From the sequence record KT919973.1: a stretch of 64,000 nucleotides of DNA; one strand, 5' to 3'. The notes below the pieces were generated by a model, which ran no database searches, had not been told where the DNA came from, and worked only from the letters and a program-made list of their open reading frames with translations. Within the stretch, counting starts at the first letter, position 1, and the number at the start of each line of letters is the position of its first letter. The position numbers were made by a program, and so were the translations under genes. Shown here piece by piece: positions 8,613 through 10,422 of the stretch.

Positions 8613-9100
8613 TTCGTAAAATTACACTCGTTGCACTAGCAACACTGGCACTTGCCGCATGTGACAACAAACCTGCGACGCTTGATACTAACGCTTACTA
8701 TGCTGAACAAGAAGATGAACAGCTACTAGTTGACGCACCAACCACTGAAAAGTTTGACGTGACGCTGCCTGTTGTTGAAGAACAACCGCAACAACCACAG
8801 ACGGTCGTTGTACAGCAAGATGACGGGTTTGATTTAGGTGATGCAGCGATTGGTTTTGTTGCTGCTGAGTTAATCGACGAAGTAGGTGATTCTTTTGAGT
8901 CGAAGAAGACGCACGTTAAGCAAGTTGTAATCAAGCAGCCTGTAAAGAAAGCGCCAGTGATTAAACGTGTTGAACCTAAAAAGGTAGAAGCGAAGAAGAT
9001 AACAAAGACTGTAGTCAAGAAGAAACAGAAAAAAGAAAGCTTTTTAAATCGAGCAGTCAAAAAAGTGAAAAAATCGAAGTTTAAAAAACGTCGCAGATAA
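8609..9100 (+). CDS. Lipoprotein with a very basic C-terminal tail
   Basis: Lipobox LAAC; acidic middle; Lys/Arg-rich last 60 or so aa. Confidence 0.8.
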   Translation: MIRKITLVALATLALAACDNKPATLDTNAYYAEQEDEQLLVDAPTTEKFDVTLPVVEEQPQQPQTVVVQQDDGFDLGDAAIGFVAAELIDEVGDSFESKKTHVKQVVIKQPVKKAPVIKRVEPKKVEAKKITKTVVKKKQKKESFLNRAVKKVKKSKFKKRRR

Positions 9101-9130
9101 AAAAAGGGAGCAATTAGCTCCCTTTTTTTT
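9099..9130. terminator. Bidirectional intrinsic terminator
   Basis: A7-GGGAGC-AATTA-GCTCCC-T8 between convergent genes. Confidence 0.9.
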
Positions 9131-9131
9131 G

Positions 9132-9689
9132 TTATTTTGACTTCTTAGCGGCTTTTTTAGCACGTTTAGTAGCCTTTTCAATCTTTATCAGCTCTGCTTC
9201 CATCTTCTCAAGACCTTGAAGATATTGATCAGATTGCTTGATGTCGCTACGAAATACGCCTTTCGCTGTTGCAATATCAATGTCACTGTTGAGACTTGTG
9301 CGAAGCTTACGAACTAAGAACAACGAACGCTCTAAGTCTTTTTCAAATGCTGCTACTTTCTTCTCAGTGATATCGTCTTGTTTCAGTGAGCGATACTTCT
9401 CGATTTTCTTCATAGTCTTTTTGAGTTCGCTGTAGTCTTTGCGTGCTTGACCGCCTGCAAATAACGCACCACCAATAAGACCATGAATACCGAGACTAAT
9501 TGCACCCCATGTTGCAAGTGGTACAGCGACTGCCAAACCACCTGTTGCTGTCGCACCCGCTGCTGCGGTCATAAAGCCAAATGCAGCACCGAGAGATGCA
9601 CCAGCTAATGCAGAACGACCAGCCCATTGCTTTATTGTAGCTTCTTTAAGCTCTGTTTCTTTATATTCATCAAATGTTTTAAGTTCCAT
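9132..9689 (-). CDS. Putative late internal-head/injected protein with a Gly/Ala hydrophobic hairpin
   Basis: N-terminus MELKTFDEYKETELKEA resembles the T4 capsid-targeting sequence; long G/A-rich hydrophobic stretch; AAAGGA RBS. Confidence 0.6.
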   Translation of the reverse strand: MELKTFDEYKETELKEATIKQWAGRSALAGASLGAAFGFMTAAAGATATGGLAVAVPLATWGAISLGIHGLIGGALFAGGQARKDYSELKKTMKKIEKYRSLKQDDITEKKVAAFEKDLERSLFLVRKLRTSLNSDIDIATAKGVFRSDIKQSDQYLQGLEKMEAELIKIEKATKRAKKAAKKSK

Positions 9690-9715
9690 CACGGTATTCC
9701 TTTGTTGTCAGTAAT

Positions 9716-9812
9716 AAAAAACGAGGGAAGCGACTATAGTTGGAACCAATACTCGCAGTGACCAATGCGATACATAGTCACGACCCTCGAAACTGAATAA
9801 AATATTGTGTAT
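9716..9812 (-). ncRNA. Candidate structured RNA or leader (multi-stem, ends in U6)
   Basis: Stems CGAGGG/CCCTCG, GACTAT/ATAGTC and TCGCA/TGCGA nested within 9722-9789; no ORF; upstream late-like promoter. Confidence 0.5.
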
Positions 9813-9816
9813 GATA

Positions 9817-9824
9817 TATTTAGT
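9817..9824 (-). promoter_or_regulatory. Late-promoter variant ACTAAATA
   Basis: Keeps the TAAATA core of TATAAATA; points toward the structured leader and the minus-strand gene. Confidence 0.45.
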
Positions 9825-9876: not shown

Positions 9877-9905
9877 TTGACTAAAGTGTAAAAAATGCTT
9901 ATCAT
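9877..9905 (+). promoter_or_regulatory. Early promoter
   Basis: TTGACT-17bp-TATCAT with A-rich upstream element. Confidence 0.75.
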
Positions 9906-9957
9906 AAGGCATATTCTGATTAAACGTTCAATAATCCAACAAAAAGAGATTTATATT

Positions 9958-10422
9958 ATGACACCAAAAGACATTCTACGCGCTGCGAACACTACTGTTT
10001 CTAAGCTGAGTATTTTAAATGGCGAGTACAGCACAGTTGTTCTAGGCTCACCTGCAAGTGGTAAAAACACTATGCTATTGGGTATGATGATGCAACGTGG
10101 CATCGACAACTGTACAATGATCGTTACAGAAACACATCCCGCTAATATGGCTAATAAAATTGGTGTTGGTGCATTGGTTGTATGTGGTGGACTGAATCTT
10201 GAAAAACTCATTGAGGCAGTTTCATTTGCATGTACTCAAGATCGTGAACATATCTTCATCGAGCACGTGCAGCCTATGTTAGGTCACGACATCGTTGAAA
10301 TTCTAGAGTCAATCGTGAAACCATTCAACAAGCGCATCTACATCGGTATTCAAGCTGCACGCAGTAGCGGTCTAGGTGATAACTATAAAACACAAATGAT
10401 GAATACATTGACACTGGGGTAA
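9958..10422 (+). CDS. Small P-loop NTPase-like protein
   Basis: Walker A-like GSPASGKNT; hydrophobic strand plus E (HIFIEH). Confidence 0.55.
   Translation: MTPKDILRAANTTVSKLSILNGEYSTVVLGSPASGKNTMLLGMMMQRGIDNCTMIVTETHPANMANKIGVGALVVCGGLNLEKLIEAVSFACTQDREHIFIEHVQPMLGHDIVEILESIVKPFNKRIYIGIQAARSSGLGDNYKTQMMNTLTLG

Follow-up and report, generated by a model that had tools for sequence, protein, structure and literature searches.

A probable small regulatory RNA gene with two alternative folds in the T4-related vibriophage phi-ST2 and its relatives

Base-pairing small RNAs of phages and prophages include DicF of Qin, OOP of lambda and VpdS of vibriophage VP882. These described examples belong to temperate phages or prophages, and they act mostly on host mRNAs or on genes of the lysis-lysogeny decision. 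T4-type phages regulate their late genes via promoters, mRNA processing and protein repressors, and we know of no trans-acting small RNA with a phage target described for this group. The small stable RNAs of T4 (species 1 and 2, rnaC/rnaD) are encoded in the tRNA cluster and are cut from a tRNA precursor. For KVP40-like phages, our literature searches returned neither a report of an sRNA nor a transcriptome study, and a look through public RNA runs yielded none containing phi-ST2.

Here we describe an element of Vibrio phage phi-ST2 that, judging from comparative sequence analysis, is probably an undescribed phage regulatory RNA. In the explanation that we prefer, with a probability of roughly 0.5, it is a stand-alone late RNA gene with two folds and its own terminator, and its product would pair with the start of the phage gene phiST2_0163 and thereby limit synthesis of that protein.

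Setting, distribution and structure of the element

The window, that is the whole stretch of 64,000 nucleotides that was analysed, comprises bases 1-64000 of the phi-ST2 record KT919973, and window and record coordinates are identical. Phi-ST2 is a T4-related Schizotequatrovirus close to KVP40, with a genome of 250 kb. Most of its early genes lie on the plus strand, and in the stretch examined the late structural genes (tail fibres, baseplate hub, head completion) are mostly on the minus strand. The element is situated on this late strand, within a 265-nt gap between the divergent genes phiST2_0018 and phiST2_0019, and no gene on its 5' side on the minus strand would need termination. All sequence elements named in the original prediction, which had proposed a structured RNA of about 95 nt, were found on the minus strand where it had placed them. 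The parts of the locus are as follows:

9132-9689, minus strand: phiST2_0018, the gene 3' of the RNA element
9689 (or GTG at 9692), minus strand: start codon of this downstream gene, preceded by AAGGA
9716-9789, minus strand: structured RNA element of phi-ST2
9716-9727, minus strand: 3' strand of stem P1, CCCUCG (9722-9727), followed by U6 (9716-9721), an intrinsic-terminator-like 3' end
9730-9738, minus strand: 3' strand of P2, UAUAGUCGC, whose UCGC also pairs with GCGA 9753-9756 in fold B (Py)
9741-9749, minus strand: UUGG/CCAA
9742-9753, minus strand: proposed seed AGUAUUGGUUCC, single-stranded in fold A, partly in the Py stem and loop in fold B
9753-9770, minus strand: P3 hairpin of fold A, with UCGCA (9766-9770), the 8-nt loop UUGGUCAC (9758-9765) and UGCGA (9753-9757)
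9773-9781, minus strand: common 5' strand GUGACUAUG, partnered by 9730-9738 (P2, fold A) or by loop 9758-9764 (Px, fold B)
9784-9789, minus strand: 5' strand of P1, CGAGGG, pairing with CCCUCG 9722-9727
9790-9811, minus strand: putative 5' leader
9817-9824, minus strand: ACTAAATA, a variant of the T4-type late promoter, with a -10-like box and no -35
9877-9905, plus strand: sigma-70-type early promoter TTGACT-17-TATCAT, serving phiST2_0019
9895-10422, plus strand: longest open reading frame of phiST2_0019, with a probable true start at 9958

The start of phiST2_0019 is probably at 9958 rather than at 9895, because the PHROG match begins at residue 22 and the GenBank annotation gives 9958. The sequence TTTTACACTTTAGTCAACA around the early promoter is kept in phi-ST2, KVP40 and VS2 and carries one change in D482. 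Given this conservation, the gap appears to be shared by back-to-back early (plus) and late (minus) promoters. Beyond the far end of phiST2_0018, a 13-bp hairpin at 9099-9129, flanked by A7 and T7, forms a two-way terminator between the convergent genes phiST2_0017 and phiST2_0018; this hairpin drew many weak chance matches in Rfam.

According to blastn, the element is present once in each of about 47 KVP40-like vibriophage genomes. A covariance model built from the sense strand likewise recovered one copy per genome (sense 92.5 bits vs antisense 17.4). The RNA is unannotated in all of the approximately 50 public genomes of the group. For comparison we distinguished ten lineages, namely the phi-ST2 group, the KVP40 group, VS2/VS1/QD01, nt-1 (Mylasvirus), the D482 group, F86, 1.081.O and the metagenomic phages L063, L064 and L065. 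The copy of 1.081.O (L055:2985-3054) is divergent and was found by eye. The RNA was not found in D479, the nearest outgroup T4-like vibriophage, which is weak evidence because the covariance model also missed the copy of 1.081.O. Two annotations in these records deserve mention. Small hypothetical CDSs overlie the RNA gene or its promoter in D482 and F86 (L007 2091-2213 and L012 1150-1242) and are probably gene-caller artefacts, and the 1.081.O record carries a 'CRISPR spacer 1' ncRNA feature within rIIB (L055 381-404), presumably a protospacer matched by a host spacer.

The element is more conserved than its surroundings. Its identity to phi-ST2 is 95% in KVP40, 83% in nt-1, 69% in D482 and 76% in F86, above both flanks (53-76%), and the corresponding values for the downstream protein are 61%, 42%, 66% and 64%. 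The sequence GCGAGUAUUGGU is invariant in 8 lineages. Outside the genomes compared, pattern scans of IMG/VR returned KVP40 and VH7D only, plus chance matches in G+C-rich contigs, and one metagenome pattern scan gave 0 matches. When the 19-nt core was searched against 185,579 prokaryote genomes, 15 matches were obtained in unrelated taxa, which is about the number expected by chance; none of them was in Vibrio, and hence there is no host copy or perfect host complement of the core. A blastn comparison with E. coli genomes, which excludes long matches only, detected no complementarity to conserved rRNA.

The predicted folding energy of the phi-ST2 RNA (-26.4 to -26.5 kcal/mol for 74-85 nt) lies well below that of dinucleotide shuffles (-15.2 +/- 2.7-2.8 kcal/mol), with z scores of -4.0 to -4.2. 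None of 200 shuffles folded as well, as anticipated for a genuine structure, and homologues in nine lineages gave z scores of -3.0 to -6.2. Counted from its predicted start the RNA would be about 95 nt long, with a 68-nt folded core plus the U tail. ARAGORN detected 0 tRNA or tmRNA genes in the whole window, in line with the statement that the RNA is not a tRNA. The families of Rfam 15, including riboswitches, ribozymes, Y RNA and known sRNAs, gave no match over 9716-9800 at E <= 10 in a 1.6-kb search, and a search of a 151-nt piece yielded a single 9-bit chance match.

Covariation was scored across 8 lineages. It is strongest in P1, where all five scored pairs changed on both sides, 99-100% of cells hold a pair and none of 500 shuffles scores as high; when the strands are slid against each other as a control, paired cells fall to 32-62%. 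The covariation expected by the original prediction is thus borne out for P1, and the individual support from P2, P3 and Px is modest. Pair 6 of P2 is U-A in five lineages and C-G in three, and in L064 this helix is rebuilt as UCGGUU/AAGCCGA (fold read by eye). The closing pair of P3 changes from A-U to U-A in F86. In Px, where 98% of cells are paired, pair 7 changes from A-U to G-C in D482, and pair 6 occurs as U.G, C-G or U-A. The P3 loop contains GGUCAC, which is invariant in six lineages and reads AGUCAC in L065.

Within the constant stem P1 the core can adopt two mutually exclusive folds. Fold A consists of P2 (GUGACUAUG/UAUAGUCGC) and P3 (UCGCA/UGCGA), and fold B of Px (GUGACUA with UGGUCAC of the P3 loop) and Py (GCGA..UAU/AUA..UCGC). 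The exclusive pairing of GUGACUA and the loop, one of the claims made beforehand, is real, and constrained folding placed the two folds close together. Fold B minus fold A amounted to +0.2 kcal/mol in phi-ST2, +0.5 kcal/mol in both KVP40 and VS2, -1.7 kcal/mol in nt-1, -0.1 kcal/mol in D482 and +2.0 kcal/mol in F86. The consensus structure obtained by RNAalifold is fold B. Both helix cores reach at least 0.15 in the ensemble in five of six lineages, compared to 6-10% of random phi-ST2 mutants carrying 6-10 substitutions, and the two-state character therefore looks maintained in this small sample. A further alternative pairing that had been put forward, UUGG with CCAA, is present at 9749-9741 in phi-ST2, but the mini-hairpin is not conserved in relatives and was rejected as a conserved feature. 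An H-type pseudoknot in which Px and P3 coexist was likewise rejected by inspection; zero nucleotides are available to cross the 7-bp stem, and without a linker this arrangement is sterically excluded.

Could the conserved sequence be something other than an RNA gene, for example a DNA-level site (protein binding, or a hairpin for replication or recombination), a simple terminator or a gene for a tiny peptide? Good folding is seen for the plus strand too (z -5.3), and a short open reading frame (..VTASIG..) covers the core in most lineages. We nevertheless consider this highly improbable, since G.U pairs such as the U.G of P2, found in all eight lineages, work only in the minus-strand RNA, since the promoter box and the U tail point the minus-strand way in every lineage, and since there is no upstream minus-strand gene to terminate. 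A small protein gene was rejected separately. The open reading frame has no Shine-Dalgarno sequence, begins with TTG or GTG, varies between 8 and 49 codons and has no start in L063, and the other core frame is not kept between lineages.

Promoter, terminator and the downstream gene

The box ACTAAATA resembles a T4-type late promoter in that it is a TATAAATA-like box without a -35, of the kind found shortly 5' of late genes. Its CTAAATA is invariant 5' of the RNA in all ten lineages, and the flanks and the distance to the stem (3-27 nt) vary. Throughout the phi-ST2 genome, a Shine-Dalgarno sequence and an open reading frame follow within 70 nt at 17 of 31 CTAAATA sites (55%) and at 24 of 32 ATAAATA sites (75%), compared to 5 of 37 GTAAATA sites (14%) and 3-33% for permuted control boxes. 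Because CTAAATA and ATAAATA precede genes above the controls, we conclude that [A/C]TAAATA is the late box of phi-ST2. The head-completion (gp4), gp48 and tail-fibre genes, too, have a CTAAATA 18-40 nt ahead of their start codons. The original label of a late RNA is thereby supported indirectly, since CTAAATA is placed close to genes in much the same way as ATAAATA and some of its sites lie in front of known late structural genes, and ACTAAATA becomes a credible candidate for a late promoter of the RNA.

Late transcripts of T4 begin about 6 nt past the promoter box. With this spacing the start is predicted near 9811 in phi-ST2 and at the first stem bases in nt-1 and 1.081.O. The leader is accordingly variable in length, with essentially none in these two lineages, and its final six bases (CAGUUU) are kept in most lineages. 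ACTAAATA also precedes phiST2_0182, a tiny gene in the tRNA cluster (record 101971, minus strand; L035 about 37971). Its product starts with MKTFD, similar to the N-terminus MELKTFDEYK of phiST2_0018, and the two may share a paralogous N-terminal module.

At the 3' end, the U run directly abuts the 6-bp stem P1, which contains 5 G-C pairs and encloses a 56-nt insert. This is an atypical layout for a terminator, and a simple terminator scanner made no call for P1 and U6, its loop limit being smaller than the enclosed part. All lineages have a U-rich tail behind P1, with weaker versions in nt-1 and D482. The VS2 group and 1.081.O carry, directly behind the element and ahead of a convergent gene, an additional hairpin terminator of canonical form.

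The spacing between U6 and the ribosome-binding site of phiST2_0018 is only about 22 nt, leaving no room for a promoter, so this gene would be expressible only via read-through of the terminator. PhiST2_0018 encodes a protein of 185 aa with two predicted membrane helices and a coiled-coil, lysine-rich tail; it belongs to phrog_14713, and scans of PHROG and Pfam assigned no function to it. The downstream membrane-protein gene is present in six lineages, 20-35 nt past the U tract. It is absent in four (VS2/VS1/QD01, 1.081.O, L063 and L065), in which a convergent gene follows the RNA and in which promoter, helices, core and terminator are nonetheless intact. The blastn match of VS2 to phi-ST2 starts at window position 9715, one base before the 3' end of the element. 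Since four lineages without the downstream gene keep promoter, RNA and terminator, we conclude that the element is most plausibly an RNA gene in its own right and not only a leader. These orphan units suggest an independent transcription unit, as in trans-encoded sRNAs. Of the two options originally offered, the stand-alone small RNA is thus supported, by the retention of the unit without its downstream gene and by its conservation above the flanks.

The other option, an attenuator or riboswitch, fared worse. The six lineages folded under constraint all retain P1 and the U tract whichever fold is imposed, and the fold switch can therefore not decide termination. No conserved antiterminator pairing was found on inspection of the lineages, and one candidate, GCGAG with the 3' strand of P1, was rejected by inspection, as it is not conserved in D482, F86 and nt-1. 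Alternative folds that gate a terminator or a helix at the ribosome-binding site, the hallmark of such leaders, were not observed, and no riboswitch family matched.

A broader version of this idea holds that the element is a cis-acting 5' leader of the membrane-protein gene, be it a leaky terminator, a 5' stabiliser or a switch responding to a ligand or protein, and that the orphan copies reflect recent gene loss. In six lineages transcription would indeed have to cross the element, as the gene lies 20-35 nt beyond it with no intervening promoter; the near-equal energies of the two folds would suit a switch, and the weak U tails of nt-1 and D482 would favour read-through. Recent loss fits poorly with the gene-less lineages, which have kept promoter, helices and core, have added a terminator of their own, and include at least two that are far apart (target protein 82% vs 60% identical to phi-ST2). 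A switch is further disfavoured by the presence of P1 and the U tract in both folds, and the downstream ribosome-binding site is sequestered in neither. The element is, moreover, far better conserved than the gene it would serve. We regard a leader function as quite unlikely and return to the stand-alone RNA gene.

Complementarity to the start of phiST2_0163

The first 114 kb of phi-ST2 (the window and L035) were scanned for exact complements of the 96-nt RNA, and one 12-mer was found. The seed AGUAUUGGUUCC (9753-9742) is perfectly complementary to GGAACCAAUACU at record positions 79761-79750 on the minus strand. GGAACCAAUACU occupies positions -12 to -1 of phiST2_0163, directly before the AUG, and contains the Shine-Dalgarno GGA. 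Fold A leaves the seed unpaired, and no part of the RNA varies less than it. In a pattern search of the 250-kb record the 12-mer was confined to the RNA and the phiST2_0163 site, with no other copy at 0 or 1 mismatch. For the whole RNA compared with all 412 start regions, we estimate a chance expectation of about 0.03 matches of 12 nt.

The target side is conserved as well. The block CAUAGGAACCAAUACUAUG, located in front of the phiST2_0163 AUG, does not vary among eight lineages (phi-ST2, KVP40, VS2, D482, F86 and three metagenomic phages), among which the proteins are 50-87% identical and the upstream leader and the first codons vary. The predicted duplex comprises 12 contiguous pairs in phi-ST2, KVP40 and L065/L069, 12 in VS2 (one G.U) and F86 (two G.U), 11 in D482, and 10 in L063/L067 and nt-1. 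For six of these eight lineages the target was shuffled 200 times, and only 0-5 of the shuffled versions paired as well as the real one. The only two-sided change was seen in nt-1, where the RNA has ..GGUCCUAC and the target GUAGGACC.., one base shorter; both partners have changed and 13 of 14 positions pair by hand count. After subtraction of the opening costs, the net binding energy is predicted at -3 to -9.5 kcal/mol. A conserved seed with a conserved target site, as known from trans-encoded sRNAs, is accordingly seen in the sequences of eight lineages and is weak in 1.081.O. These lineages are not independent trials, because seed and target block are both conserved by descent.

When candidate starts were ranked by duplex energy with wobbles and loops, using a 20-nt seed scan, the phiST2_0163 start region came second of 1,348 (-20.5 vs -21.5), and the other top-ranked sites look like spurious internal starts. 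A ranking by full-length RNAduplex was dropped, since it returned meaningless long gapped duplexes. The pairing is less regular in two lineages. In 1.081.O the seed has lost GUA, and the remaining 7-bp pairing is no better than in shuffles. In the L064/L068 pair a bulge interrupts the pairing. L064 has an extra U, and its seed is buried in a stem; in L068, the presumed target of L064 from a sister sample, an A-to-G change gives a wobble pair. In the outgroup D479, neither the RNA nor the target gene was found.

A TATAAATA box is located about 40 nt 5' in the phiST2_0163 mRNA, and both RNAs would consequently be late. After this box, the phiST2_0163 leader starts with a hairpin, CUGAC-A-GUCAG (L035 15790-15775; record about 79790-79775, minus strand), which KVP40 and VS2 share and which may serve to stabilise the 5' end.

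PhiST2_0163 encodes 191 aa and has homologues only in the KVP40-like phage group; neither Pfam nor PHROG gave a function. The AlphaFold model (mean pLDDT 74, pTM 0.30) consists of an N-terminal membrane helix, a very long helix (33-156) and a further helix (164-190), and we predict a membrane-anchored coiled-coil protein. The gene directly follows the distal tail-fibre gene, beside a Tad2-like gene and near an anti-sigma (AsiA-like) gene. At this position T4 has its holin gene t, and the layout of the protein resembles that of an inner-membrane spanin. Identity with the T4 holin T was rejected, as support from Pfam and PHROG is absent and the model shows a membrane helix and long helices without a globular domain. 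The search for a spanin partner led to one overlapping 63-aa ORF without a proper lipobox, which is unconvincing. In four metagenomic relatives (L067, L068, L069 and L070/L071) the convergent neighbour of the phiST2_0163 orthologue carries PF11195 (Tad2-like, anti-Thoeris family), and phiST2_0162 is probably the same Tad2-like gene.

A stand-alone RNA need not act through its seed. It may instead be recognized by its shape and serve some protein of the host or the phage as a decoy or handle, in which case the complementarity to phiST2_0163 would be a coincidence, held in place because both sites are conserved. Conceivable partners are RNA chaperones, nucleases, defence proteins and processing enzymes of the RNase P type. 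Invariance extends beyond the seed to GUGAC, GGUCAC and GUCGC, and fold B, the RNAalifold consensus, joins three helices in a junction and has its 5' and 3' ends paired. By eye, a T-loop-like GGU-N3-A pattern is recognizable in six lineages. The variable leader length would suit 5' processing at the stem, and 1.081.O retains the RNA despite its 7-bp seed pairing. Against these points, no Rfam, tRNA or tmRNA model matched even at E <= 10, and no gene for a partner protein travels with the element, whose neighbours vary among lineages. Recognition by shape would also leave unexplained the invariant, complementary 19-nt block before the phiST2_0163 AUG. We therefore hold it to be unlikely, and prefer pairing with phiST2_0163 as the function of the RNA gene.

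Proposed function and relation to known systems

Following this preferred explanation, the RNA would be transcribed late in infection from ACTAAATA, the variant of a gp55-type promoter, and would fold co-transcriptionally, with Px able to form before P2. Transcription would end at P1 and U6, the intrinsic terminator of the RNA itself. The core may then equilibrate between fold A, a rod of P2 and P3 in which the invariant 14-nt strand is free, and fold B, a three-way junction of Px and Py in which this strand is partly hidden. The free strand of fold A (AGUAUUGGUUCC), or its loop part in fold B, would nucleate pairing with the Shine-Dalgarno and AUG region of phiST2_0163. Such pairing would block ribosome loading on the mRNA, so that synthesis of the protein is limited or delayed. 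In phages that have the downstream membrane-protein gene, read-through transcripts may express it. A more specific proposal, which we advance tentatively and think somewhat less probable than its negation, is that this two-state antisense RNA serves as a timer or dose control for one late membrane protein of a virulent T4-type phage.

If true, this would be the first trans-acting regulatory RNA controlling a late gene in the T4 group, possibly one that tunes lysis or virion completion. As the RNA gene is conserved, occurs in single copy and has a specific predicted target, it lends itself to direct tests. Phi-ST2, KVP40, ValKK3 and their relatives are under study as biocontrol phages in aquaculture, and because the RNA may tune a late membrane protein in these phages, it could bear on latent period and burst size.

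Among the described systems, the G+C-rich stem directly followed by a U run is what the element has in common with intrinsic terminators. It differs from them in that its 'loop' is a structure of 56 nt that is conserved, covaries and contains an invariant core of 20 nt, and in that no upstream gene is there to be terminated. With trp-type attenuators (1:2/3:4 vs 2:3) and bistable switches it shares segments that swap partners: GUGAC pairs with GUCAC or GUCGC, and UGCGA with UCGCA or UCGC, the folds lying within about 2 kcal/mol of each other in six lineages. The exchange is enclosed by an outer stem that stays constant and doubles as the terminator, and a leader peptide, ligand pocket or antiterminator, as in attenuators, was not found.

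The small stable RNAs of T4 resemble the element as small non-coding RNAs of a T4-type phage. Measured against what is generally described for them, the phi-ST2 RNA is set apart by lying about 90 kb from the tRNA cluster and by having a predicted promoter and terminator of its own.

The closest resemblance is to DicF, OOP and VpdS. As in these, the sequence predicts a short transcript that is non-coding and is bounded by a promoter of its own and an intrinsic terminator, and a conserved seed predicted to pair at the Shine-Dalgarno and AUG region of an mRNA. In contrast to them, the phi-ST2 RNA belongs to a strictly virulent T4-type phage, with a gp55-type late promoter and a late phage mRNA as predicted target. 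Its terminator stem encloses the whole RNA instead of forming a separate 3' hairpin, and there is no relationship to them in sequence or in Rfam. We propose that the RNA would work like a classical trans-encoded base-pairing sRNA while standing outside any described family.
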